From Macrostomum lignano (taxonomy: Eukaryota), in contig NIVC01000012.1 of the NCBI GenBank assembly GCA_002269645.1, forward strand, positions 1,054,001-1,118,000: a stretch of 64,000 nt of DNA, in the 5' to 3' direction. Shown here piece after piece: positions 3,560-63,100 of this stretch. The notes below the pieces were generated by a model. That model searched no databases. It saw only the letters and a program-made list of their open reading frames with translations, and was not told the DNA's origin. Made by a program: the position numbers and the translations under genes. Position 1 is the stretch's first letter. Every line of letters starts with the position of its first letter.

Positions 3560-6325
3560 CACAGATACTACAAACACTAGATAGGCCACTCCAGCTAATT
3601 TTCACAACACGACACTTTACTCTACTTTCTGCTTAGTAGTAGTAAAAACATTTTAGCGTTATTTATATTTTTTAAAAATAAAAAAACAGATGAATGCAAT
3701 GCAGCAATTATATTGATTTTATTTGCAAAAGGAAACTTATAATTATACTTTCCACAGTTCAAAGCAACATTGTGAATGCTTTAGATTGCATAGAAGGCTA
3801 TATTATTGCAGTCAACTATTGTATATTTAGCAAATACGAGCTATATCATATACTCCATAATCCATATTCGTGTAGCAAAATAGAAAGATTTCTCATCTTA
3901 ATCAGCTCATCTGTTTGTGAAACTCGCAGCGTGCTGTCGAAGAACAGGGGGTCGCCAGTCGCCCTTGTTCAGAGGCAGCATTCAGAACGGCCCAACAGAT
4001 GAAAAAAACTGGCGAATGCGCCACTTCAAGGTCCAGGGATGTATCCGATGGAGAGCCAATCCTCAGTGGTTTCGTAACAGGCAGCCGATAAGCAGCAGGA
4101 CTTTTGTGGTGCAGCTGCAATGAGCTGCTGATGAAATGACATCCTTTGACCAGAGCACCCCTGACTGCGAGCGCCCTGCCGCCCAGTCGACCGCTGGAAG
4201 CTGCGCTAGCCACGCCTCCACAGTCCATGGATGCACGACTGCGCTGCACTTGCCTTGACCATCGAGAGTTGCCGCTGCAGCCGCTTGATTTGCCTGTCGC
4301 TTTCGGGATTGCCGATGCAGCCGCTTGATTTGCCTGTCGCTTTCGGGATTGCCGCTGCAGCCGCATGATTTGCCTGTCGCTTTCGGGATTGCCGCTGCAG
4401 CCGCTTGATTTGCCTGTCGCTTTCGGGATTGCCGCTGCAGCCGCTTGATTTGCCTGTCGCTTTCGGGATTGCCGCTGCAGCCGCTTGATTTGCCAGTCGC
4501 TTTCGGGATTGCCGCTGCAGCCGCTTGATTCGCCTGTCGCTTTCGGGATCGTTGCTGCAGCCGCTTGATTTGCCTGTCGCTTTCGGGATTGCCGCTGCAG
4601 CCGCTTGATTCGCCTGTCGCTTTCGAGATTGCCGCTGCAGCCGCTTGATTTGCCAGTCGCTTTCGGGATTGCCGCTGCAGCCGCTTGATTCGCCTGTCGC
4701 TTTCGGGATCGTTGCTGCAGCCGCTTGATTTGCCTGTCGCTTTCGGGATTGCCGCTGCAGCCGCTTGATTCGCCTGTCGCTTTCGGGATTGCCGCTGCAG
4801 CCGCTTGATTCGCCTGTCGTTTTCGGGATTGCCGCTGCAGCCGCTTGATTCGCCTGTCGCTTTCGGGATTGCCGCTGCAGCCGCTTGATTCGCCTGTCGC
4901 TTTCGGGATCGTTGCTGCAGCCGCTTGATTTGCCTGTCGTTTTCGGGATTGCCGCTGCAGCCGCTTGATTCGCCTGTCGCTTTCGGGATCGTTGCTGCAG
5001 CCGCTTGATTTGCCGGTCGCTTTCGGGATTGCCGCTGCAGCCGCTTGATTCGCCTGTCGCTTTCGGGATCGTTGCTGCAGCCGCTTGATTTGCCTGTCGT
5101 TTTCGGGATTGCCGCTGCAGCCGCTTGATTCGCCTGTCGCTTTCGGGATCGTTGCTGCAGCCGCTTGATTTGCCGGTCGCTTTCGGGATTGCCGCTGCAG
5201 CCGCTTGATTCGCCTGTCACTTTCGGGATCGTTGCTGCAGCCGCTTGATCGTTGCCTCTAGCGCTTGGAACCCGCGAATCGGCTGCAGAGGTGAGAGCTT
5301 TCAGCCGCAACAGCTGTTCTCGGCGCAGAATCTGGTAGCCGAAGGTTGCTCTGCCACAGCACTGGCAGCAGGCAAGTCGCAGGCTCGGCTGCAGATAGAT
5401 TGCTAATTGGCCCCAGCACTGGAGGGTACATGTCGTCTGCCTCTTCATCGTTTATCAGTCCTTTGCACAGAGGGTTGCTGGTCTATTTGAACGAGCCGAG
5501 GCAGCATCAACTCTTGGTGTGGGATTGCGTCCCAGCGAAAACAGATGTCTTGCACATCCGTGGCACTTTGTAAGGCAGCAGTAGGCCTCGTCCATAAAGT
5601 GCAAGCCGAACACACGGAGGCCCCGTGATTTAATTGTTTATAAAGGTCAATATCCATGCTCCTGCAGTAGCTGCTGCCAGCGCTTCGCCAGTGTCATCTT
5701 TTGGTAATTAATGCATTCGCAACGGATTTTTCTTTCTCGGATGTTAATAGCACTAGTACAAAGCTCGTGCAAGTGGGAGCACAGCAGTGGTTCGAATCAA
5801 AACATTTCTCGAGTACAAGATTAGATAGAAAAGCTAGTATGCACTCGAACTTTCTTTAACTCTGACTCTTGTCCTGTTCATCTATATAAGCTTGTATTTA
5901 AGCACGATTCGCCACCCCCAAATTTTCTAACCCACAACCTCTCAACCCCCACCCCTAACCCAGGCTAGCTATGTGCAGTCCTTTATTTTCTATCCCACCA
6001 CCAGTAGGCCTAAATTATTGATCCACTCACCCTGCCTTATACGAAACTGATATTAACCCTATTCCAGACTACCCCCCTTCCTCCACTTTGAAAGATAGCG
6101 GCATTGCACACTGTCTGTCGCGTCTTAATGTACACCATTACTGCACAAAACAAGTTAGTTGTTTATGGCGTTAGCAAAACGATGTCTTAAAAACAGTCAC
6201 TCGATTTGTCTAATTTAGCAAATAATACTTTTGCTTCCTTTCATTGCTACTAAGCAGAAAGTAGAATAAAAAACTTGCCCAGAAAATTAGCCTGAGCGGC
6301 CCATCTAGTGTTTATAGTATCTGTG
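3560..6325. mobile_element. Non-autonomous P-superfamily-like DNA transposon (2766 bp) inserted in the 17-bp satellite
   Basis: Imperfect ~43-bp TIRs CACAGATACTACAAACACTAGATAGGCCACTCCAGCTAATTTT / AAAATTAGCCTGAGCGGCCCATCTAGTGTTTATAGTATCTGTG; perfect 8-bp TSD GTCAGGAC at 3552-3559 and 6326-6333; termini fit CANRG..CYNTG; no transposase ORF seen. Confidence 0.85.
4270..5250. repeat. 40-bp minisatellite (GCCGCTGCAGCCGCTTGATTTGCCTGTCGCTTTCGGGATT)n inside the P-like element
   Basis: About 24 units; explains ORF 4063..5448. Confidence 0.92.
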
Positions 6326-7265
6326 GTCAGGACACCTGAAGGGTCAGGACACCTGAAAGGTCAGGACACCTGAAGGGTCAGGACACCTGAAGGGTCAGGA
6401 CACCTGAAAGGTCAAGACACCTGAAGGGTCAGGACACCTGAAGGGTCAGGCTAGCCGAAGGGTCAGGACACCTGAAGGGTCAGGCTAGCCGAAGGGTCAG
6501 GCTAGCCGAAGGGTCAGGACACCTGAAGGGTCAGGCTAGCCGAAGGGTCAGGACACCTGAAGGGTCAGGCTAGCCGAAGGGTCAGGACACCTGAAGGGTC
6601 AGGCTAGCCGAAGGGTCAGGACACCTGAAGGGTCAGGACACCTGAAAGGTCAGGACACCTGAAGGGTCAGGACACCTGAAAGGTCAAGACACCTGAAGGG
6701 TCAGGACACCTGAAGGGTCAGGCTAGCCGAAGGGTCAGGACACCTGAAGGGTCAGGACACCTGAAGGGTCAGGACACCTGAAGGGTCAGGACAAATGAAG
6801 GGTCAGGACACCTGAAGGGTCAGGACACCTGAAGGGTCAGGACACCTGAAAGGTCAAGACACCTGAAGGGTCAGGACACCTGAAGGGTCAGGACACCTGA
6901 AGGGTCAGGACACCTGAAGGGTCAGGACACCTGAAGGGTCAGGACACCTGAAGGGTCAGGAAACCTGAAGGGTCAGGACACCTGAAGGGTCAGGACACCT
7001 GAAGGGTCAGGACACCTGAAGGGTCAGGCTAGCCGAAGGGTCAGGCTAGCCGAAGGGTCAGGACACCTGAAGGGTCAGGACACCTGAAAGGTCAGGACAC
7101 CTGAAGGGTCAGGACACCTGAAGGGTCAGGACACCTGAAAGGTCAAGACACCTGAAGGGTCAGGACACCTGAAGGGTCAGGCTAGCCGAAGGGTCAGGAC
7201 ACCTGAAGGGTCAGGCTAGCCGAAGGGTCAGGCTAGCCGAAGGGTCAGGACACCTGAAGGGTCAC
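6326..7265. repeat. 17-bp satellite, second copy (continuous with 3441-3559 before the insertion)
   Basis: Same unit and variant order as ~1790-2730. Confidence 0.95.
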
Positions 7266-7510
7266 CTGAACGTTAAGGTTATCTGAAGGGTAATTGAATT
7301 ACTATAATTGCAATCTGGAATCCCGGAAGTCAGACACTTCCTATACAACGACAAGGGAAGCAAACAAAAAATGCTAAAAGCAAGCAAAATGAATTAAAAT
7401 TTGCCCATCTGGGATAAAAAAGTCTAAACTGAAATTCTTACAACAACAGCATAAACAACTTGACTAACTACCGAGATCTTCAGAAACACACAGGGGCTTT
7501 AAGTCAAAGT

Positions 7511-8074
7511 TTAAGCCTTTTGCTCCATCAGAGGCTGCTGGGGAGGCGGCGGCTGCGGCTGATAGATGACCTGCTGCTGGGGCTGCTGCTGCTGATTGCT
7601 GGCACCGCAGTAGCCCCTGGCCCGCATTCGATAATAAATCAGCACCACGATGCCGCCAACGCCCAGCCAGACAGCAAAGGCGATCAGGATGGTCAGCAGA
7701 TCCCAGGAGGCGGCCAGCAAATACGCCAGCACGCCGGCCGTGTCGCCAGCCTCAATGCAGTTGTCTTCATCGCCAGTGAGTGCGCAGTCCATTGTGGCAT
7801 CGCAGCGCTGGTCGCATTCGTACACTTCAACAGAATACCGATTGCAGGCGCAGTAGCACTTCACTCTGTCCCGGTTGGCTCGCGACGTGAAGTTTTTGTC
7901 GCAAGAGTCGCAGCCGGAGCAGAGGATTCGGTCTTTGGCGCACTTTTGTTCCGCCTCGTTCATGCAGGAAACCCGCGATACCTGACGGGCAGGGGGTTGT
8001 CTGGCTGTCTGCCTGCCTGTCCTGCGAGTCTGCTTGCCGGTCTGCGCTTGTCTTTCAGCCTGTTTTTCTACCTA

Positions 8075-8113
<39 letters not shown>

Positions 8114-8116
8114 TCC

Positions 8117-8149
<33 letters not shown>

Positions 8150-8176
8150 TCCTGTCTGTCTGTCTGTCTGTCTTCC

Positions 8177-8220
<44 letters not shown>

Positions 8221-9032
8221 GGTCTGTCTGTCTGTCTTTCCATCTTTCTGTCTGTCTGTCTGCCTGTCTGCCTGTCCGTCTGTCTGTCTTCCTATCTGCG
8301 TGTGTGTCTGTCTTAGTGTCTGTCTGTCTGTCTGTGTATCTATCTGTCTGTCTGTCTGTCGGTCTGTCCGTCCGTCTGTCTGTCTGTCTGTCTGTCTGTC
8401 TTTCCATCTTTCTGTCTGTCTGTCTGCCTGTCTGCCTGTCCGTCTGTCTGTCTTCCTATCTGCGTGTGTGTCTGTCTTAGTGTCTGTCTGTCTGTCTGTT
8501 TGTCGGTCTGTCCGTCCATCTGTCTCTCTATCCGTCCGTTTGTCTGTATATCTGTCTGTCTGTGTATCTATCTGTCTGTCTGTCTGTCTGTCTGTCTGTC
8601 GGTCTGTCCGTCTGTCTGTCTGTCTGTCTGTCTGTCGGTCTGTCTGTCTGTCTGTCTGTCTGTGTATCTATCTGTCTGTCCGTATGTCTGTCCGTGTGTC
8701 TATCCGTCTGTCTGCTTGACCGCCTGACCATATGGAAGCCAGAAAGCATGTAAATAAAGCATAGCACAGTTACGAAAGAACCTCACCCGATCAGAGTACT
8801 CAGACTCCAGCAGCAGCCAGGCGCAGGTCATGCTGCTGTCACTGTCCAAGCACAGCTCCAACGCCTTCGATTTGGTCCGCTCTGACGGGCTCAGGGCGGC
8901 ACCGCTTAGCTTTGAATTGACCAGTCTTGTAGCCGCAGCCTCCTGCTTGGAGACTGCGTCCTGAGCCTGGCTGCCCGCTAGGACCATCAGGGCGACCAAA
9001 GCCAAAACCAGCGGATCAGAGGACGAGAGCAT
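7511..9032 (-). CDS. Type-I membrane protein, paralogue 1 (signal peptide, Cys-rich domain, partial LDLa module, TM, Q/P-rich tail); complement join(7511..7981,8787..9032), 238 aa
   Basis: Phase-0 intron CGG|GTGAG...CAG|GTA joins ORF 8700..9032 to ORF 7511..7963; the spliced product aligns with the two intronless paralogues (C..CAWL..VSC..E..C, CYCAC, CDATMDC..DEDNC). Confidence 0.85.
8065..8715. repeat. Degenerate (CTGT)n microsatellite filling the intron of paralogue 1
   Basis: Direct reading. Confidence 0.95.
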
Positions 9033-9189
9033 TTTATCAAGCTTATTGTATTTTATATTTTTGTATAGATTTTTTACTATGCGGCTTAAATATTAAGCTG
9101 GAAAATTAACCAATACATGTTTCTTTGTCGAATAAGCAGGAATAAATTTGATTATTTTATTGCAATCCCTTGAACTATTACAGACACAA

Positions 9190-10277
9190 TATCAATCACT
9201 GAGTGTGTGACAGAATCAGTCACCCAGTGTGTCACAGAATCAGTCACTGAGTGTGTCACAGAATCAGTCACTGAGTGTGTCACAGAATCAGTCACCGAGT
9301 GTGTCACAGAATCAGTCACCGAGTGTGTCACAGAATCAGTCACCGAGTGTTTCACAACATCAGTCACCGAGTGTTTCACAACATCAGTCACTGAGTGTTT
9401 CACAACATCAGTCACTGAGTGTTTCACAACATCAGTCACTGAGTGTTTCACAACATCAGTCACTGAGTGTTTCACAACATCAGTCACTGAGTGTTTCACA
9501 ACATCAGTCACTGAGTGTTTCACAACATCAGTCACTGAGTGTTTCACAACATCAGTCACTGAGTGTTTCACAACATCAGTCACTGAGTGTTTCACAACAT
9601 CAGTCACTGAGTGTTTCACAACATCAGTCACTGAGTGTTTCACAACATCAGTCACTGAGTGTTTCACAACATCAGTCACTGAGTGTTTCACAACATCAGT
9701 CACTGAGTGTTTCACAACATCAGTCACTGAGTGTTTCACAACATCAGTCACTGAGTGTGTCACAACATCAGTCACTGAGTGTTTCACAACATCAGTCACT
9801 GAGTGTTTCACAACATCAGTCACTGAGTGTTTCACAACATCAGTCACTGAGTGTTTCACAACATCAGTCACTGAGTGTTTCACAACATCAGTCACTGAGT
9901 GTTTCACAACATCAGTCACTGAGTGTTTCACAACATCAGTCACTGAGTGTTTCACAACATCAGTCACTGAGTGTTTCACAACATCAGTCACTGAGTGTTT
10001 CACAACATCAGTCACTGAGTGTTTCACAACATCAGTCACTGAGTGTTTCACAACATCAGTCACTGAGTGTTTCACAACATCAGTCACTGAGTGTTTCACA
10101 ACATCAGTCACTGAGTGTTTCACAACATCAGTCACTGAGTGTTTCACAACATCAGTCACTGAGTGTTTCACAACATCAGTCACTGAGTGTTTCACAACAT
10201 CAGTCACTGAGTGTTTCACAACATCAGTCACTGAGTGTTTCACAACATCAGTCACTAAGGTCGCAGCGTCAGTCACT
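9190..10277. repeat. 24-bp minisatellite (CAGTCACTGAGTGTTTCACAACAT)n
   Basis: About 45 units, highly homogeneous. Confidence 0.95.
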
Positions 10278-10934
10278 GGGTGGAAGATAAAAAAAGGAAA
10301 ATGAAAGAAAAGTGAAAAAATTCAATATTAAAAAGGATTCCTTAATTAAGTGTGTTATTTACAAATATTGTAAATAAAATATTGATTATTATCAATTACA
10401 AATATTGATTGAAATCTGTTCTATAGCTAGCATTGTTGAATAAAATAGATTAATGGGTTAAATAATGCGGGTTTGAGATTAATTTTGAAAAGTAAAAAAT
10501 ACAATACAATAAATAAAAATTACAAAACAAAGAAAAGTTTAATTAGGCGCACTAAAAGTTACATTATAAGTGAAAATATGGCTTCAGGACACAGACATAC
10601 TCGTAAAAATCAATATTTAAGTAATGAACTGTTTCCAATTATTACAAAGGAAGAATGAGTTATTACTGAACTAACTAACAGAACTCTTCAACATTACCTT
10701 GCGAGTAGATTAGTGCTTTGAAGTTAGCAACTAGGATAAATAACTTAATAAAATCAACCCAAGAAAAAATTTTATTAAACGACATTAGCAGCAGATCAAA
10801 GACCAATTAGGTTTCTCGCTTATTAAACGTTCAAGGTGAACTTTTAATCCCTAGTTGAAAGTACAAAGAACAAAGATGGTTGGGCCATAGACAACAGGCA
10901 AATTTCTTCCCATTCTGCCGACTTCCCGCAGCAG

Positions 10935-11146
10935 GCACACAAGCGCGCGGATATACGCACAGGCACACACTCGCACAGGAGTGTACAGCGGCCCTAACTT
11001 TATTTATCGTTTGGCATGTGCTTCACTGTGCCTTGTGCCTCAAGGGCGTCAATTGCACGAGCAGAGCCAAGCCGAGATTCCAATTTTAGCCCCAAATTAA
11101 TGTGACTGCACTTGGAATCGAGCGAGGGCCGGATCACTAGGCTACG
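10935..11146 (-). mobile_element. tRNA-derived SINE copy
   Basis: Reverse strand has TAGCCTAGTG (A-box-like) and GCTCGATTCC (B-box-like), then a body near-identical to 28212-28375. Confidence 0.7.
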
Positions 11147-11427
11147 CCCACCGTCCAAAGCGTAAGTAAACTCCCAAGATAAATAAGTCGCCTGGAAAAT
11201 AATTTTTCGAAACCATATGATTCGAAAAACTGTTTAATTACAGGGTTTTAGGTTTACCTTATATTTTAACAACCGAACACAAGTGAACTGCACTTGACTA
11301 GAGATAATAGAGTGACAGAGTCAACTGAGCTGACAGATCGTAATTCCAAACTGCACTCTCCCCTTGCAGCAGACCTTCTAGACTTAGTGCCTCTAAACTT
11401 TAGCTGTCAAAAAATCAAAATTAAAGT

Positions 11428-12288
11428 TTATGAAGCCACAACAGACTCATAAGACGGAGGCGATTGATAAGACAGCTGCTGCTGCTGCTGCTGTGGATAA
11501 GGTTGCAAAGTAATCAAATGTTGAGCAGATGGCGGCTGAGTTGTCATCAAATGCTGGGCAGCTTTGTACGCACGATACCGTTTATACATAGTATAACCAG
11601 CGATTATAGATACGAAGACAATAACTGCAGCAACAATGACAGTGTACAGAATGTCATTTGATCTGTTATCGCCCAATTCTGGAGCTGGATTGCCTTTCTG
11701 TTTGTAATATTTGCACATTTTGTAGTCCTCATCGGCGCTGCTTGAGCATGCTTCTCTTTTATCGCAAAGATTGCTGCATTTATAATAGCCTGTCTTTAAC
11801 GCCTTGCCTGTGTCAAGAAAAATTTTATTGCGTCCGTAATCGCAGGTGCAATAGCATTCGAATGTACAAGTGGAACAGCTTGGCCAATCAAATGTTGCAC
11901 ATGGTGAGCACAAAGTGCAATCAGAGTACCAATCCACGGTAGCGCCGCTACTACCACTACTTCGAGTAGCAAACAATCTGTCCCTGTTACACTGATCCCG
12001 CCATTCACTGTAACAGGATACAGCTATGGGAGTATTTGATGTTTTATTAATCTGCAGCCATGCGCAGAATGCTTCGCTATATTGCCTGTAGCACTGATAA
12101 ATTGCCATTGGTATTGTGCGCTGTTTTGGTGCCAGTTTTTGCAACTCCAGATTAGCTTTATAAGACGCTTTGGTACTAGAATTTGTATAGTCAAATGAGA
12201 CAGCTATTGACATTGAGCAAAACAGGCACAGCGATACAACTAGTAGGGACACTGGTGATGCTGACATGTTGATTAGTCTAATCTTCAT
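11428..12288 (-). CDS. Type-I membrane protein, paralogue 2 (intronless, 286 aa; Cys-rich, partial LDLa, TM, PPSY tail)
   Basis: Long non-repetitive ORF; hydrophobic N-terminus, CSNLCDKREAC..DEDYKMC, TM ILYTVIVAAVIVFVSIIAGY, C-terminal SPPSYESV. Confidence 0.9.
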   Translation of the reverse strand: MKIRLINMSASPVSLLVVSLCLFCSMSIAVSFDYTNSSTKASYKANLELQKLAPKQRTIPMAIYQCYRQYSEAFCAWLQINKTSNTPIAVSCYSEWRDQCNRDRLFATRSSGSSGATVDWYSDCTLCSPCATFDWPSCSTCTFECYCTCDYGRNKIFLDTGKALKTGYYKCSNLCDKREACSSSADEDYKMCKYYKQKGNPAPELGDNRSNDILYTVIVAAVIVFVSIIAGYTMYKRYRAYKAAQHLMTTQPPSAQHLITLQPYPQQQQQQLSYQSPPSYESVVAS

Positions 12289-12344
12289 CTGTGTTTTAAC
12301 ATAAATGTATTAACAACATATTTGATTGGTTGATATGGACAGGA

Positions 12345-13432
12345 GAGTCAATCTAATGGGGACAAGCGAGTCTAATCTCATGAAGACAGGGGAGTCTAAT
12401 CTCATGGGGACACGAGTCTAAATCTCATGGGGACAGGAGAGTCTAATCTCATGGGGATGCGAGTCTAATTTCATGGGGACAGGACAGTCTAATCTCATGG
12501 CGATAGTAGAGTCTAATCTCATGGGGACAGGACAGTCTAATCTCATGGCGATAGTAGAGTCTAATCTCATGGAGACAGGGGAGTTTAATCTCATGGGGAC
12601 AGGACAGTCTAATCTCATGGGGACAGGACAGTCTAATCTCATGGCGATAGTAGAGTCTAATCTCATGGAGACAGGGGAGTTTAATCTCATGGGGACACGA
12701 GTCTAATCTCATGGGGACGCGAGTCTAATCTCATGGGGACAGGACAGTCTAATTTCATGGGGACAGGAGAGTCTAATCTCATGGGGACGCGAGTCTAATC
12801 TCATGGAGACAGGGGAGTTTAATCTCATGGGGACACGATTCTAATCTCATGGGGACGCGAGTCTAATCTCATGGGGACAGGACAGTCTAATTTCATGGGG
12901 ACAGGAGAGTCTAATTTCATGGACAGGGGAGTTTAATCTCATGGGGACAGGAGAGTCTAATCTCATGGGGACAGGGGAGTTTAATCTCATGGGGACAGGA
13001 GAGTCTAATCTCATGGGGACACGAGTCTAATCTCATGGAAACAGGGGAGTTTAATCTCATGGGGACACGAGTCTAATCTCATGGGGACGCGAGTCTAATC
13101 TCATGGGGACAGGACAGTCTAATTTCATGGGGACAGGAGAGTCTAATCTCATGGGGACGCGAGGCTAATCTCATGGAGACAGGGGAGTTTAATCTCATGG
13201 GGACACGAGTCTAATCTCATGGGGACAGGACAGTCTAATTTCATGGGGACAGGACAGTCTAATCTCATGGGGACAGGAGAGTCTAATCTCATGGGGACAG
13301 GAGAGTCTAATCTCATGGGGACGCGAGTCTAATCTCACGGGGACAGGAGTCAATCTCATGGGGACAGGAGTCAATCTCATGGGGACAGGAGTCAATCTCA
13401 CGGAGACAGGAGTCAATCTTACGGGGACAGGA
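12345..13432. repeat. 21-24-bp minisatellite (GTCTAATCTCATGGGGACAGGA-like)n
   Basis: Direct reading, several unit variants. Confidence 0.93.
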
Positions 13433-13725
13433 ATTCGGTCTTCAGAAGTGAAGTCTACTCAAAAAACTCACTAAGATCCAGCGTGTAACATTAGCAGCGT
13501 ACATAATTTTGCTGGCAATTTTATTTCTGAAAACATAAACTGTAGACAGTTAATGACTAGACAAAAAAGCGCAAACGTGACGACAGAAAAGGTTATAAAA
13601 GTGGCTTCATAAATACATATTAAAATGTACAAGTGTTCTCATTATTAGAGAAGCACGAATATAATTGCACAGTAAAATAACAAGTTATGAACATCAATAA
13701 AGTAAATGAACTGTATTAACAGTAG

Positions 13726-13936
13726 AACTACCAAGGGGGGGGGGGTCAGGGGGAATCGCAGAACGAAGCAACGCCTATCTTTAAACTGTTGTTGCACACC
13801 CTCTCAAACAAGAATAAAGTCGTCAGACATCCAGACCGTCGAGATATTCTGCCAGAAGGTCGAATTTTGCCGAGCTGATGCAGATACACGTGATCGAAGT
13901 ACACTGGCGCTTTTAGGAAATCCCCCCTTGGTAGTT
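13726..13936. mobile_element. Possible MITE
   Basis: Perfect 15-bp inverted repeat AACTACCAAGGGGGG / CCCCCCTTGGTAGTT; no TSD identified. Confidence 0.45.
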
Positions 13937-14467
13937 TGCTATTTCTGTTTTGAAGCATATACGAGTAATAATATCAAAATATTAAACAAGGTATACCTCT
14001 AACTGTCGGTAAAGTACTTTGTATACCCATATTTTGTAAGTATTCTAATTAGAAATTTACGAACATTAGCAACTTAGTATAGGTAGACACAGAGACTGCT
14101 CGTTAGAATCAGTCATCGTTTAGGCCAAAACCATCTGGCTGGACTTTAAAGTCGTTCTTTGGAATTAGATGCATCTTTCGAGGTATTTTTAGCACAATTT
14201 CAGCCTGTGAAGAGGAACTTTACAATCAGTTTTCTTTGTTTTGAAAACTCCGGCCCTCGGGTCTTTTTAAACTTCATAATAGCAATCGGACCTGATTCAG
14301 TTCTCTTTTCTCCCCTCTTCGCCCTTTTTTTTAGTAGAGCATTGACTTTACATAACTCAGCTTATTCAAAAAGCTTTAGAAAAGTCATTCAATATTTATT
14401 CAAGGTATCAGATTTTTTTCAGCTGACTTCCCCAACTAGCAATCGCTTATATTGATAATCTGATTAT

Positions 14468-15352
14468 TCAAGACTTGACCGCGGAATCGTAAGCTGGCGG
14501 AGGTGGCATATCCTGCTGACGGGGAGGTTCAGCATTATCAGCAAGGGTAGACAATGCCAAAGCTGACGGAGCCTTTTGCATTCGCTTCAAATGCTTATTG
14601 TAGGATGAGCATTTTATGCAGCAGTACATCGAAGCCAAGAGGAGTATTACAAATCCAGTGACGCCGATTACACTATATAACAGTATCGCATCAGATGAAA
14701 TTTTAAAGTCTGGCGCCGGATCGCCAACCTGTTTATAATATCGGCACTGCAAGTCTCCCTCATCTCTATTAGACGGATATGGTCCGCCGCAGTCGGTGAC
14801 GCCATCGCAAAACTGATTACACGGATAGACGTCTACACTGGGATCGTCAGATTCCCAACTGTACTCATTGCCGTAGCGTCGATGAGCGCAGGTGCAATAG
14901 CAAACCAGCCTGCAATTTGGACAATCTGACCAACTATATTGAGCACAGGGTGAGCACAGACTGCATTGAGTCGAATTGCGATTATATCGAATAACACTAC
15001 TAGTAGTAGACGAATATGGATATGGATTGGCCTTTTTGACACCTTTAAATTCTTTTATGCGTCGATTGCACTGGCGTTGGAATTCGTTGAAACAGGATAC
15101 AGCTACAACTGGACTGCCTGGTGCCAAGTCGTCTACGGCTAACCAGGTACAGAATGAGTTTTTATTGCCCTGCTTATGGCACAGATTAACAGCTACAGCT
15201 ATTGTTCTCAGGTTAGGAGCCAAGCGCTTCAGTTCGTTGTTGGCCTTAATTGTTGCGTTCCATTCGGCACTGTTGGCGAAGTTGTAAAATGCGCACTGAG
15301 CTGAGCGCAATGTTACTAATATTAGTAGAGATATAATACACACTCCATGCAT
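14468..15352 (-). CDS. Type-I membrane protein, paralogue 3 (intronless, 294 aa; Cys-rich, partial LDLa, TM, PPAY tail)
   Basis: Signal peptide, CNQFCDGVTDC..DEGDLQC, TM ILLYSVIGVTGFVILLLASMY, C-terminal PPPPAYDS; same Cys spacing as paralogue 2. Confidence 0.9.
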   Translation of the reverse strand: MHGVCIISLLILVTLRSAQCAFYNFANSAEWNATIKANNELKRLAPNLRTIAVAVNLCHKQGNKNSFCTWLAVDDLAPGSPVVAVSCFNEFQRQCNRRIKEFKGVKKANPYPYSSTTSSVIRYNRNSTQCSLCSPCAQYSWSDCPNCRLVCYCTCAHRRYGNEYSWESDDPSVDVYPCNQFCDGVTDCGGPYPSNRDEGDLQCRYYKQVGDPAPDFKISSDAILLYSVIGVTGFVILLLASMYCCIKCSSYNKHLKRMQKAPSALALSTLADNAEPPRQQDMPPPPAYDSAVKS

Positions 15353-15464
15353 CGCTATTTGTCTGGTCTATTAGCATGCATTATTGTGAAAAACGAGCAT
15401 TACATAACAGCGGTTTTTATGAGTTCATGCGTGTTGGTAGCTTTTAGAATCATTTAGTGGATGG

Positions 15465-15780
15465 TCCAGCAACTGAGGATCTGAGAGGCTGGCCCAGTAA
15501 CTCATGGGGATCTGGGAGGCTGACCCAGTAACTTATAAGGATCTGGGAAGCTGGCCCAGCAAATGACACTCTGGGAGGCTGGCCAGCAACTGAGGATCTG
15601 GGAGGCTGACGCAGTAACTCATGAGGATCTGGGAGGCTGGCCCAGCAACTAAAAATCTGGGAGGCTGGCCAGCAACTGGGGATCTGGGAGGCTGACGCAG
15701 TAACTCATGAGGATCTGGGAGGCTGGCCCAGCAACTGAAAATCTGGGAGGCTGGCCCAGCAACTGAGGATCTGGGATGCT
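15465..15780. repeat. ~28-31-bp minisatellite (GATCTGGGAGGCTGGCCCAGCAACTGAG-like)n
   Basis: About 11 degenerate units. Confidence 0.88.
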
Positions 15781-36088: not shown

Positions 36089-41785
<5,697 letters not shown>

Positions 41786-57172: not shown

Positions 57173-60100
57173 ATGAGCAGCGAAACAGACAATCTTGGCC
57201 CGCTGGCTTCGCCACTTAGCGATGCAGCCAATCGGTTTGGTGGCGGCAGCGGCAAGCAGCGAATGTCAGTGGAAAAAATCTACCAGAAGAAGACTCAATT
57301 GGAGCACATATTGCTCCGGCCGGACACCTATATTGGCTCAGTAGAAAGTGTCCGCCAGAACATGTGGGTCTACGATTCCACCGCTAAACGCATGATTGAA
57401 CGCGAGATCACGTTCGTGCCTGGCCTCTATAAAATCTTCGACGAAGTGCTGGTCAATGCGGCGGATAATAAACAGCGCGATCCCGGCATGTCCTGCATTC
57501 GCATCACCATCAGCAAGGAGGACAATCTCATCGAAGTGTGGAACAATGGCAAAGGCATCCCAGTAGTTGAGCACAAGAAAGAGAAGCTCTATGTTCCAAC
57601 GCTAATCTTTGGTCACTTATTGACGTCTAGCAATTTTAATGATAGCGAGAAGAAAACTACGGGAGGTCGAAACGGCTACGGAGCGAAACTGTGCAACGTC
57701 TACAGTCGCCAATTCACTGTTGAGACCTCGTGCAAAGAGTCCGGGAAACGGTTCCAACAGACTTGGACTGACAATATGGGCAAAGCTGGCGAAGCTAAGA
57801 TTATGAAAAATGGCGCCGAAGATTATACTAAGGTAGGTTAATCCACCTGACAAATTTATGGCCTTTGATAAGCATTTTCTGCTCTCTGGATAATCTCCGT
57901 TCAAATTCTCACATGTATCTGGATTAATCCTTAATCAAATTCTCACCGATAGCTGGATAATCTCCCTTCAAAGTCTCACAGATATCAGGATAATCTCTCT
58001 TCAAAGTCTCACAGATATCAGGATAATCTCCCTTCAAAGTCTCACAGATATCAGGATAATCTCCCTTCAAAGTCTCACAGATATCAGGATAATCTCCCTT
58101 CAAAGTCTCACAGATATCAGGATAATCTCTCTTCAAAGTCTCAGATATCTGAATAAGTTTCATTTGAAAGTCTATTTTTTAAGTTTCGATAATAATCCAT
58201 TCTAAGTCTTACTAATGTTTCGATAATCTCACTGAATAGTCACACATAATCTCATGAGTCTCTTTTCAAAGTCCCTTGAAAGTTTCAGTAGCCTGTTTAA
58301 GACGATACCGTGATAATAATCACTAAAGAATCATTGCAAACAACTCACTAGTGAATCCATATCGAGGCTGGGGCGAATTTTGTGACTTTTAAGCGACTGA
58401 AACGACAACGACTGTAATGGCGACTGTTGAGTCGCTAAAAAGGGACTTCAAAGTCAAGTTCAGGCGCTTAACTTTCTACTAACTTCAAGTAGACTAAATA
58501 GAGTTTTAAAAATGCAAAATTTGATTCCAATTTATAAAGTGATGCAGATGCGCTTTAGACGCCACTCAGCGATTCTACAGCGACTCTAGCGCGACCCAGA
58601 TATGACTCTACGGCCGCAGACGCCTCAAACTGATTCTTAGGCGACTTATAAAGTCACTTCTTTTCCATTTTTACCTGTGTTACCCGCAACGACTATGGAG
58701 CGACGCAAGTGGCTCAATGACGCTTCTTAGCTAAGGCACCGTTTGCATCGGATAGTCTCTTAATCTCCTGTAGTTTATTGATGATCTCCTATTGATCGCA
58801 AATTATGAAGGTATTAAACAATGCCCGTTGTCAGTCAAATTAATCAGTTATATCGCAATCTTTGCAGGTGAGCTTCAAGCCGGACCTCACGAAATTCGGC
58901 ATGACCGAACTGGATGACGACACGATCGCCTTGTTCAGCCGTCGGGCTTTCGACATTGCCGGCACTTGCAGCGGCGTTCGAGTGTTTCTCAACGGCGAGA
59001 AACTGCCGGTCACTTCGTTTAAGGACTATTACAGATTGTACCTCACAGAGAAGGAGGACAAAGAGGTGGCTATTATTAAAAGTGGCCGATGGGAGCTGGC
59101 TGTTTGTCTGAGCAACGACGGATTTAAGCAGGTAAAGTTTTGAGCATTAATACTAAGTAATGTAATTTAGTTGTGATTTGTGATTAGGGGCACCCTAATT
59201 ATCACCCGAGGATGAGGTGAGTACGCTACTTTAATTAGGGTAATTATCACCTCTGAGCATGAGGTGGGTAGGCCTCTATTAATTAGCTAATTATCACCTC
59301 TAAGCTTGAGTTGGTTGCGCCACTCTAATTAGAGTAATTATTACCTGTGAGCGTGAGATGGTTGCGCTACTCTAATTAGGGTAATTATCACCTCTGAGCG
59401 TGAGGTGGGTAGGCCTCTAATTGGCTAATTATCACCTCTGAGCTTGAGGTGGTTGCGCCACTTTAATTAGGGTAATTATTACCTGTGAGTGTTAGGTGGT
59501 TGCGCTACTCTAATTAGGTTTTAATTATCACCTCTGAGCGTGAGGTGAGTGCGCCGCTTTAATTAGGGTAATTATCACCTCTGAGCGTGAGGTGAGTGCG
59601 CCGCTTTAATTAGGGTAATTATCACCTCTGAGCGTCAGGTGAGTGCGCCGCTTTAATTAGGGTAATTATTACCTCTGAGCGTGAGGTGGGTGCGCGCCTC
59701 TCTAATTAATAATTACTTCTGGCCAAGTGGAAGATGGTTGCACCTGTTTAATTCAATATTAATTATCGCCTTTAGGATGTTATTATTACACGGTAAATTA
59801 TGCTGCTGGCTACTGGGCACAGGTACGCAGTGTACATCCATTCAGAGTTTTTTCGTTGAGATTCACGCGCGAGTTCACAATTCACAGAATCGAACCCGGG
59901 ACTTTAGCGCAAAATTTTCTAAAATAAGAAAATAAATTTCGATACATATCGGAGATCCACTTATATTTGAAACCTTCAACTTCTCCACAGGTCAGCTTTG
60001 TGAACTCAATCGCCACCACCAAAGGCGGCCGTCACGTTGACTTTGTCTGCGACCTGCTGCTCAAACGCCTTGTCGACGCAATCGACGGCAAGTGCAAAGC

Positions 60101-63100
60101 CGACAAGAAGAATCTGAAAGGCTCCATCAAGCCGGCATTTGTGAAAAATCACCTGTGGATCTTCTGCAACTGTCTAATTGAGAATCCCAGCTTCGACTCG
60201 CAAACTAAAGAGTTCATGACTTTGCAAGCGAAGAAATTTGGCAGCGCGCCAGAATTGGACGACAAATTCTTTAAGAAGCTTCTGTCCGAAGACTGCGGTA
60301 TTGTCCGGTGCGTCCTTGAGTACGCCGACTTCAAGACCAACAAAGCTCTGAATCAGCGAACCAAAGCCAGTAAGAAGACGTTCCACGAGAAACTCGACCA
60401 TGCTAACAATGCTGGCAAAGGCGAGTGCGTTCTGATCCTGACTGAGGGCGATTCGGCCAAGTCCCTGGCTGTGGCCGGTGCCAGCTCCCTGCCGGACGGC
60501 CGAGACAGGTTCGGCGTGTTCCCGCTGAAAGGTAAACTATTGAATGTTCGCGAGGCTAGCAAGGACCAGCTAATGAATAACAAGGAGATCAAAGTTATTC
60601 AGGACGCTGTGAACTTGCAGTACGGCAAAAAGTACAACACAGTGGAAGATTTGAAGTCGCTCAGGTATCGGCATATTATGATCATGACCGATCAGGACCA
60701 GGACGGCTCGCATATCAAAGGACTCATCATTAACTTTATTCACTTCTTCTGGCCCGAGCTGCTGCGTCACGACTTCTTGCAGGTGAGTAGTTTGACTCAT
60801 TCAGTATTGAACCGCATTTACACTCGCTTAGAAATAGCCCTTAAATCCAACCTGGCAATGGCCCTAATCTGTCTTAGGAATCATCCCTAATCCATCCTTT
60901 AGTATCTTCCCTAATCCACTCCGAGAATCGTCACTAATCCACCCTGAGAATCGCCACTAATCCACCCCGAGAATCGCCACTAATCCACCCTGAGAATCGC
61001 CATTAATCCACCCTGAGAATCGCTCTAAATCCACTCTGAGAATCGCCCAAAATCCACTTTGAGAATCGCCCTAAATCCACTCTGAGAATCGCCCTAAATC
61101 CACTTTGAGAATCGCCCTAAATCCACTCTGAGAATCGCCCCAAATCCACCCTGAGAATCGCCCCCAATCCACCCTGAGAATCGCCCCAAATCCACCTTGA
61201 GAATCGCCCCAAATCCACCCTGAGAATCGCCCCAAATCCACCCTGAGAATCGCCCCAAATCCACCCTGAGAATCGCCCTAAATCCACCCTGAGAATCGCC
61301 CCTAATCCACCCTGAGAATCTCCCTAAATCCACCCTGAGAATCGCCCTAAATCCACCCTGAGAATCGCCCTAAATCCACCCTGAGAATCGCCCTAAATCC
61401 GTATTACTGTCTCAAGAATTGCCAACCCACACGGTAAAGCCTATCAATAACCATGGCAACCCCTGCAGGAGTTCATCACGCCAATCGTGAAGGTGACCAA
61501 GCGCGACCAGGTGAAAGCATTCTATTCCATGCCGGAATTTGACGAATGGCGCGGCCAGACGCCCGACTGGCACAAGTGGCACGTGAAATACTACAAAGGT
61601 TTGGGCACCTCGACGGCTAAAGAGGGCCGCGAATATTTTCGCGACATGCGTCGGCACTGCGTCCGATTTATACGACGCGATCAGACCGACGAGGAGTCGA
61701 TTCTGATGGCATTCGGCAAGAACGCCGACATGCGAAAAGACTGGCTGTTGAAGTTCATGGACGATCGGAAGCGCAGGGCCGACCTTGGCCTGCCCGAGGC
61801 CTACCTGTACGAGAAGACAACCAGAGAGATTAGCTACAACGATTTCGTGCACAAGGAGCTGGTGCTATTCTCAAATGCCGATAATGAGCGATCCATTCCG
61901 TCTCTGGTTGACGGACTGAAGCCTGGACAGCGGAAGGTCATGTACACCTGTTTTAAGCGCAATCTGCTCAAGGAGATTAAGGTGAGATCCTATATACTAA
62001 AAATGATCCTATCGAAATAGACAGGTAGATATGGTCACTAAGACAGGTAGATACAGACACTAAAACAGGTAGATATGGTCACTAAGACAGGTAGATATGG
62101 TCACTAAGACAGGTAGATATAAACACTAAGACAGGTAGATATGGTCACTAAAACAGGTAGATATGGTCACTAAGACAGGTAGATACAGACACTGAGACAG
62201 GTAGATATAGACACTAAGACAGGTAGATATGGTCACTAAGACAGGTAGATACAGACACTGAGACAGGTAGATATAGACACTAAGACAGGTAGATATGGTC
62301 ACTAAGACAGGTAGATACAGACACTAAAACAGGTAGATATGGTCACTAAGACAGGTAGATATGGTCACTAAGACAGGTAGATATAAACACTAAGACAGGT
62401 AGATATGGTCACTAAGACAGGTAGATACAGACACTGAGACAGGTAGATATAGACACTAAGACAGGTAGATATGGTCACTAAGACAGGTAGATATGGTCAC
62501 TAAGACAGGTAGATATGGTCACTAAGACAGGTAGATATGGTCACTAAGACAGGTAGATACAGACACTAAGACAGGTAGATACAGAAGACAGGTAGATACA
62601 GACACTAAGACAGGTAGATATGGTCACTAAGACAGGTAGATACAGACACTGAGACAGGTAGATATGGTCACTAAGACAGGTAGATATAGACACTAAGACA
62701 GGTAGATATGGTCACTAAAACAGGTAGATATGGTCACTAAGACAGGTAGATATGGTCACTAAGACAGGTAGATACAGACACTAAGACAGGTAGATACAGA
62801 AGACAGGTAGATACAGACTGTAAGACAGGTAGATACAGACACTAAGACAGGTAGATATGGTCACTAAGACAGGTAGATATGGTCACTAAGACAGGTAGAT
62901 ACAGACACTGAGACAGGTAGATACAGACACTGAGACAGGTAGATACAGACACTGAGACAGGTAGATACAGACACTGAGACAGGTAGATACAGACACTGAG
63001 ACAGGTAGATATGGTCACTAAGACAGGTAGATATAGACACTAAGACAGGTAGATATGGACACTAAGACAGGTAGATACAGACACTAAGCAAGGTAGATAC

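Follow-up and report, generated by a model that had tools for sequence, protein, structure and literature searches.

Proteins of the LDLRAD3/LDLRAD4/PMEPA1 type are small membrane proteins in which an LDL-receptor class A (LDLa) module and/or a transmembrane (TM) helix is combined with PPxY (PY) motifs that bind Nedd4-family ubiquitin ligases. Comparable mechanisms, in which the protein serves as an adaptor or is itself a down-regulated receptor, are known from Comm/PRRG4, Shisa-like proteins, Ndfip and LDLRAD3. In Comm (GLPSYDEAL) and PRRG4 (GLPSYEQAV), an extended motif, (L/P)PxY-acidic-x-A/V-hydrophobic, is critical, and in Comm it binds Nedd4 (PMC5578492). Shisa-like proteins (STMC6; Pei and Grishin 2012) have a cysteine-rich ectodomain, one TM helix and a proline-rich tail with PY motifs, and have been proposed to couple surface receptors to Nedd4 ligases (PMC5578492). 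Here, we describe a tandem cluster of three genes, A, B and C, in a 64,000-nucleotide stretch (the window) of the 1.72-Mb contig NIVC01000012.1, positions 1,054,001 to 1,118,000, in assembly Mlig_3_7 (GCA_002269645.1) of Macrostomum lignano, a free-living flatworm. We propose, with a probability of about one half, that A, B and C are type I membrane receptors or adaptors, whose ectodomain would bind a partner and whose PY-bearing members would recruit a Nedd4-family ligase. The family seems to resemble the LDLRAD3/4-PMEPA1, Shisa-like and Comm/PRRG groups in its workings but to stand outside all of them.

Three open reading frames (ORFs) were confirmed on the minus strand at the expected coordinates. 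B and C are 33% identical end to end (tblastn, E=3e-35), and the ORF at 7511-7963 matches C at E=1e-4 to 1e-5. The first-pass annotation, made from the letters of this stretch, had described three same-strand paralogues with a common cysteine framework; this was borne out, except that the third ORF proved to be only exon 2 of gene A. Since its start falls inside the conserved framework, it is an exon rather than a gene. The intron is of the GT..AG type, with the donor CGG followed by GTGAGG (exon end 8787) and the acceptor cccgtcag at 7982/7981, which puts the frame back into '...VSRVSCMNEAEQKC'. The spliced product (238 amino acids, aa) is identical to UniRef100_A0A1I8G3T4 (also P0010) and one residue off GenBank PAA72099.1, so that the two-exon model is independently confirmed. 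By tblastn, the window holds no family copies beyond A, B and C. The gene models are the following:

7511..7981, minus strand: gene A exon 2, aa 83-238 and the stop codon, with VSC-xx-E-x4-C, the cysteine cluster lacking its CxxC pair, the LDLa-like half-module, the TM helix and a Q/P-rich tail lacking a PY motif.
7982..8786, minus strand: gene A intron, mostly (GACA)n/(TCTG)n microsatellite (8075-8714, ~160 copies).
8787..9032, minus strand: gene A exon 1, aa 1-82, in which the start codon and signal peptide are followed by half of the N-terminal domain, namely the first (C61, C70-A-W-L; motif C-x8-C-A-W-L).
11428..12288, minus strand: gene B, a single coding exon of 286 aa, with signal peptide (aa 1-29), N-terminal domain, cysteine cluster, LDLa-like half-module, TM helix and a tail with PPSY.
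14468..15352, minus strand: gene C, a single coding exon of 294 aa, with signal peptide (aa 1-20), N-terminal domain, cysteine cluster, LDLa-like half-module, TM helix and a tail with PPAY.

In the alignment, the three proteins have in common C-x8/9-C-x-WL, VSC-xx-E-x4-C, CxxCxxC, CYC[TA]C and Y-x-C-x3-CD-x3-[DA]C...DE-x2-4-C. The motifs listed in the earlier annotation were thus all found again in A, B and C, with one spacing corrected from E-xxx-C to E-x4-C. The framework comprises 14-16 cysteines, and all 16 ectodomain cysteines are kept in C. Protein A has neither a PY motif nor the two cysteines of the internal CxxC pair; the pair is missing as a pair in A and also in P0006, a paralogue described below. 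By hydropathy, each protein has an N-terminal hydrophobic signal sequence, one hydrophobic helix of ~23 aa and a Q/P-rich tail of ~40-50 aa. N-glycosylation sequons occur in A, B and C only before the TM segment. A, B and C are therefore predicted to be small type I single-pass membrane glycoproteins with a cleavable signal peptide. The TM helices lie at:

7631..7699, minus strand: TM helix of A, ~aa 177-199 (hydropathy).
11587..11655, minus strand: TM helix of B, ~aa 212-234 (hydropathy); the AlphaFold2 (AF2) model has a helix at 210-249.
14624..14692, minus strand: TM helix of C, ~aa 221-243 (hydropathy), followed by a juxtamembrane CC-x2-C cluster.

A HMMER profile of A, B and C was run against 1.84 billion (1.84e9) representative proteins with no word filter, at E<=1e-3. 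It returned eight matches, namely six M. lignano family members, one metagenome protein (P0007) and one repeat-derived protein (P0005, 555 aa of tandem repeats), the last of which was set aside as a likely spurious match. The six are A and B themselves together with P0003 (3e-22), P0004 (2e-21), P0006 (4e-4) and P0008 (1e-3), these four being named 'hypothetical protein BOX15_Mlig...' in the databases. They carry the framework as A[ST]...L..L.P..RT....L..C......FCAW, CFNE....CN, CxxCxxC, C[YFL]C[ST]C and Y.C...C[DS]....C....[DE]E....C, followed by a TM helix. The resemblance between A, B and C far exceeds chance and recurs in these four independently found proteins, and by alignment the three genes are true paralogues. 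Chance ORFs in repeat-rich DNA were considered and rejected on the family-wide conservation and on the existence of transcript models. At least seven paralogue types exist in M. lignano. A word-indexed protein search had low recall: B alone retrieved only B, and a seven-member ectodomain alignment retrieved only P0006. On another contig (NIVC01000946.1), P0013, with two PPPY motifs, and P0003, which has no PY motif, are neighbours on the same strand (5506-7449 and 10001-10837), so the tandem arrangement recurs in the family, pointing to tandem duplication as the way in which it usually grows.

This exhaustive search found no full-length relatives outside M. lignano. On these profile matches, the family is restricted to the Macrostomum lineage and known only from M. 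lignano, in agreement with the lineage-specific family that had been suggested. P0007 is a single-exon protein of 379 aa encoded on an ENA metagenome contig (ctg23890l, 8288-9427); its LDLa has six cysteines (Pfam E=0.42), and a TM helix and a pair of PY motifs are also present. Its match to the family profile (E=5.8e-4) covers only the LDLa-like, TM and tail part, and BLASTP against C gives E=1e-4. The two families are alike in these regions, P0007's SPPSYDEAIKA being close to the tails of B and C, but differ in the N-terminal region, which is of another kind and ~200 aa long in P0007, and in its six-cysteine LDLa. P0007 comes from a eukaryote, and its relatives form a family of ~19 clusters that occur in metagenomes only. 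The M. lignano family is already deposited in databases as hypothetical or auto-named entries, and no mention of its proteins was found in the literature.

Among the shared elements, the segment next to the membrane is the one that can be related to a known module. In LDLa modules, the disulfides are C1-C3, C2-C5 and C4-C6, and calcium is held by acidic residues after C4 and before C5 and by the D-E pair. The family segment keeps C4, C5 and C6 and one earlier cysteine with an aromatic residue before it:

7754..7828, minus strand: LDLa-like half-module of A, aa 134-158, VY-E-C-DQR-CDATMDC-ALTG-DE-DN-C.
11710..11790, minus strand: LDLa-like half-module of B, aa 167-193, YY-K-C-SNL-CDKREAC-SSSA-DE-DYKM-C, with Ala instead of an acidic residue before C5.
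14741..14833, minus strand: LDLa-like half-module of C, aa 174-204, VY-P-C-NQF-CDGVTDC-(8)-DE-GDLQ-C, with all four acidic calcium-ligand positions present.

A profile of this half-module (34 columns, six family members) was compared with PDB sequences at E<=10. LDLa-containing proteins made up 52 of the 56 matches, with best E-values of 1.7e-3, 2.2e-3 and 9.9e-3. They included erythrocruorin linkers, an NMDA-receptor auxiliary protein, VLDLR, LRP1, LRP8, LDLR, enteropeptidase, TMPRSS2, TMPRSS6, CD320 and relaxin receptors, and all matches to the profile align on columns 11-30, that is on C4-D-x4-C5-x4-DE-x2-4-C6. A reversed-sequence control against the PDB gave no LDLa protein and a single unrelated match (E=0.26). 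The same 17 columns were aligned by hhalign with LDLR LA1-7 (P=7e-4, probability 26%), a comparison that serves as a lead only. The three-sequence full-length profile gave marginal PDB matches, all on the half-module segment (haemoglobin linker L2, E=0.11; VLDLR LA3, E=1-3).

The likeness to LDLa (PF00057) thus consists in the exact C4-C5-C6 spacing, the aromatic-x-Cys ahead of it and the acidic positions, of which A and C have the full set and B and others a part. In contrast to LDLa, the family lacks C1, C3 and the N-terminal beta-hairpin lobe, has ~8-10 residues fewer between the first cysteine and C4, and holds just four cysteines in the segment instead of six. Since C1 and C3 belong to one disulfide, the losses come in pairs, as do those of the internal CxxC in A and P0006. 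Taken together, the alignments support a half-module that corresponds in sequence and spacing to LDLa's C-terminal, calcium-binding half, and full LDLa membership is unsupported. Of the partial LDLa proposed earlier, the half-module is therefore retained, on the PDB matches and their reversed control, and assignment to the Pfam LDLa family with its six cysteines is not.

The tails of B and C end in PY motifs on the predicted cytosolic side of the TM helix. The first-pass annotation had already noted both of them, and they were found at these positions:

11449..11460, minus strand: PY motif of B, PPSY, aa 277-280, at six residues from the C-terminal end (QSPPSYESVVAS-COOH); the duplicated contig keeps it as PPPSY.
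14489..14500, minus strand: PY motif of C, PPAY, aa 285-288, at six residues from the C-terminal end (PPPPAYDSAVKS-COOH).

The tails of B (SPPSYESVVAS), C (PPPAYDSAVKS), P0008 (APPPYEAAV and PPPPYTERD) and P0007 match the extended Comm/PRRG4 motif (consensus in PMC5578492). Because the tails fit this motif, weak matches to Pfam Comm (PF15957) appear on the TM-plus-tail part, the only ones there, with 11.6 bits (E=0.35) for B and 9.9 bits (E=1.2) for C, far below the gathering threshold of 27 bits. Like Comm and PRRG4, the family consists of short single-pass proteins, and PPSYESVV in B and PPAYDSAV in C may be compared with their extended motif; however, extracellular cysteines are absent from Comm, PRRGs carry a Gla domain, and the similarity may be convergent at the level of the motif. 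The architecture of B and C, with a half-LDLa next to the membrane, one TM helix and a cytoplasmic PPxY (absent from A), is that of LDLRAD3/LDLRAD4/PMEPA1 proteins, as had been suggested. The ~130-aa extra ectodomain of the M. lignano family is not known from these proteins. The homology in sequence that this likeness might have implied did not emerge, as the HMMER search of 1.84e9 proteins, a library assumed to hold them, reached no LDLRAD3, LDLRAD4 or PMEPA1 protein at E<=1e-3. Shisa-like membership was also rejected: the C*C*CC*CC pattern, as given in PMC5578492, is absent, the 14-16 ectodomain cysteines include no CC doublet, and there is no Pfam Shisa match.

From these elements, a mechanism can be proposed that we consider the most economical. 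The ectodomain would bind a partner, and the LDLa-like acidic pocket might contribute to binding in A and C, which retain each of the four acidic ligand positions. In B, C and P0008, the C-terminal extended PY motif (PPxY-[DE]-x-[AV]-V) would bring in a Nedd4-family HECT ligase by way of its WW domains. Ubiquitination and sorting to endosomes or lysosomes would follow, for the protein as well as for its bound partner. A, which has no PY motif, would share the binding function and not the coupling to the ligase. The roles in immune recognition, adhesion or gamete recognition that the first-pass annotation offered as options are guesses.

The other part of the ectodomain lies ahead of the half-module. 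It consists of an alpha/beta domain (~70 aa, four conserved cysteines) that matches no known domain, together with a dense cluster CxxCxxC...[CxxC]...CxCxC:

11839..11922, minus strand: cysteine cluster of B, aa 123-150.
11980..12201, minus strand: N-terminal domain of B, aa 30-103 (alignments).
14888..14965, minus strand: cysteine cluster of C, aa 130-155, C-x2-C-x2-C-x7-C-x2-C-x3-C-x-C-x-C.
15053..15265, minus strand: N-terminal domain of C, aa 30-100, in which two helices are followed by a beta-hairpin and a third helix; four cysteines are conserved.

With a seven-sequence ectodomain alignment, AF2 gave a predicted local distance difference test score (pLDDT) of 88-95 over most of the first 60 ectodomain residues (helix, helix, beta-hairpin, helix); a three-sequence alignment gave an unusable model (pLDDT 51). 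A Foldseek search with the seven-sequence model returned nothing below E=1 in PDB or BFVD. Among PDB sequences, no meaningful relatives came up with a profile of the N-terminal domain or one of the cysteine cluster, and nothing matched the whole-ectodomain profile. A Pfam scan of whole proteins and isolated segments recognised no domain ahead of the LDLa-like part. The possibly new N-terminal domain of the earlier annotation therefore still stands after searches of Pfam, PDB sequences and PDB/BFVD folds.

It could be asked whether this ectodomain is that of a divergent member of the TNF-receptor superfamily. UniRef/UniProt automatically names A a 'TNFR-Cys domain-containing protein', and the top Foldseek match in the PDB is OX40, although over 39 columns only, with E=3.2 and a probability of 0.01. 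The automatic name could not be reproduced. There was no Pfam TNFR_c6 match even at E<=10 and no TNF receptor among the PDB sequence matches of the whole-ectodomain or cysteine-cluster profiles. Moreover, the CxCxC and CxxCxxC spacing differs from what is generally known of the TNFR A1/B2 pattern, and no death domain was recognised. Neither model nor structure supports the name; we rejected TNFR membership and regard such an origin as very improbable.

A further-reaching suggestion, which we offer tentatively and consider doubtful in its full form, is that the ~130-aa region, comprising the alpha/beta domain with two conserved disulfides and the eight-cysteine cluster, is an undescribed extracellular fold. 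It would belong to Macrostomum-specific adaptors in which the recruitment of Nedd4 ligases is coupled to a new binding domain and to an LDLa calcium cage minimised to two disulfides, and through which the surface levels of partner receptors would be controlled.

Several observations weigh against the proposal that A, B and C are receptors or adaptors of this kind. Calcium binding is doubtful in B, P0003, P0004 and P0008, because the acidic position before C5 is lost and the residue there is A, N, K or V. PF00057 did not match A, B, C or four other paralogues, as whole proteins or isolated segments (E<=10 or E<=1; gathering threshold 24.1 bits). The seven-sequence AF2 model is of moderate confidence overall (mean pLDDT 68, predicted template modelling score 0.68); the half-module reaches a pLDDT of 54-73 only and has no LDLa match in Foldseek, a method that is weak on modules of ~30 residues. 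The PPxY carriers are just B, C and P0008/P0013, three of the seven paralogue types, and so ligase recruitment is not the common denominator of the family. This last point would fit ordinary ligand-binding or adhesion receptors, in which the ectodomain is the whole function and the PY motif only tunes the protein's own turnover, with no other cargo. It is consistent with such receptors that the ectodomain is the conserved part, with the strongest constraint on the N-terminal domain and the cysteine cluster, and that the tails vary, four of the seven types having no PY motif. However, the small size and the extended terminal PY motif look like those of dedicated adaptors. The present data do not separate the two models, and we consider the receptor without further cargo to be on the unlikely side, while still a competitor of real weight for the adaptor model.

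Concerning the reality of the genes, the GenBank models of this assembly were built from RNA-seq and transcript assemblies, and transcripts overlapping repeats were removed (PMC5730564). The GenBank product of B (P0001) begins 9 nt (three codons) upstream of the ATG with no bounding stop codon, which indicates a transcript-derived 'partial' coding sequence. PAA72099.1, a near-identical copy of A, is annotated in the same way. Since models of this kind are transcript-derived and exist for B and for the duplicate of A, the genes A and B are considered real. The first-pass annotation had named a match to a known conserved family or a lack of expression as outcomes that would speak against its reading; no known family was found, and the annotation of A and B is transcript-derived.

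The DV1 line of M. lignano has duplicated chromosomes (PMC5730564), and contig NIVC01001113.1 carries a second copy of the entire cluster. Gene A differs from its duplicate by 4 synonymous and 1 non-synonymous changes (coding divergence 0.7%) and B by 2 synonymous and 3 non-synonymous changes (0.6%); adjacent unique non-coding segments of the two contigs show 1.8-4.7% mismatches. From small numbers, this is a pattern of purifying selection on A and B between the duplicated contigs. Between the paralogues, the proportion of synonymous differences (pS) is 0.76-0.80, hence saturated, and that of non-synonymous differences (pN) in the ectodomain is 0.40-0.52; two linkers evolve at synonymous speed, that is, they are unconstrained, the most strongly constrained parts being the N-terminal domain and the cysteine cluster. 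Saturation of the synonymous sites implies that the duplications are old and that the dN/dS of the paralogues is uninformative. The description of the family as fast-diverging is consequently not supported by these data, with pN at about half of pS and purifying selection on A and B in the duplicated contig.

Gene C is less well placed, and three more points have to be added to those that weigh against the receptor or adaptor proposal. C has no annotated transcript and is missing from a collection of 15 billion proteins in which A and B are present. Its duplicate (C', NIVC01001113.1 4315-4820) has lost the equivalent of window positions 14868-14104, a deletion of 765 bp. No expression records for the Mlig gene identifiers of the paralogues were found in full texts and paper supplements. 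C' ends after residue 161 and 7 novel codons and has thereby lost LDLa-like module, TM helix and PY tail. The cluster might then be partly decaying, with C and perhaps other members as non-functional relics of a birth-and-death family. The absence of C from every protein collection searched, A and B being present, would agree with decay, as would the lost 3' half of C' and the fact that each of the six residues at which C and C' differ belongs to the signal peptide. However, the window's C keeps a full ORF of 294 aa with its 16 ectodomain cysteines, TM helix and PY motif. All 12 nucleotide differences fall in codons 2-33, and the following 384 nt (codons 34-161) are identical in C and C'. Moreover, the exclusion of repeat-overlapping transcripts from the annotation may explain why C is absent (PMC5730564). 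Decay of this kind is in our opinion improbable, less so than a TNF-receptor origin, and clearly more so than receptors acting without cargo. We therefore keep the reading of A, B and C as receptors or adaptors at about one half.

The window is ordinary animal DNA, dense with mini- and microsatellites. Large satellite arrays lie in every intergenic gap of the cluster and in the intron of A:

6325-7264: 17-bp units, x55.
8075-8714: (GACA)n, x160.
9185-10256: 24-bp units, x45.
12337-13432: 24/46-bp units, x47.
15462-15780: 31/86-bp units.

The same arrays are present in the duplicated contig with differing copy numbers, and they could promote unequal exchange within the cluster. A 461-aa ORF just downstream of A (4063-5448, minus strand) was rejected as a neighbouring gene, being a tandem repeat of ~40 aa (~120 bp) that is read through; the 3.6 kb around it (window 3560-7188) have no counterpart in the duplicated contig. 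The GC content at third codon positions differs sharply among neighbours (A 0.74, B 0.41, C 0.44), and is 0.65 in the paralogue P0003 elsewhere. Further along, the window encodes parts of two other proteins, in exons of a type II DNA topoisomerase (with HATPase_c, DNA_gyraseB and Toprim domains) and in those of the TM region of a Cys-loop ligand-gated ion channel (57173-57841 and 59967-60890, plus strand; 36089-36652, minus strand). The second family cluster, on NIVC01000946.1, likewise adjoins a Cys-loop channel gene, and also an IP3 receptor gene.

To conclude, this is one of many orphan families of flatworms, and the finding has no bearing on a long-standing open question. The proteins are now named 'hypothetical' or, automatically, 'TNFR-Cys', and the latter name is probably misleading. 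If our reading is true, the family would be a lineage-specific addition to the design of small single-pass proteins with a cysteine-rich ectodomain and a PY tail, known from the Shisa-like, Comm/PRRG and LDLRAD groups, and the LDLa module would be one that can be cut down to the two-disulfide, calcium-binding half at its C-terminus. As a regeneration model amenable to transgenesis and RNA interference, M. lignano allows the family to be tested directly.

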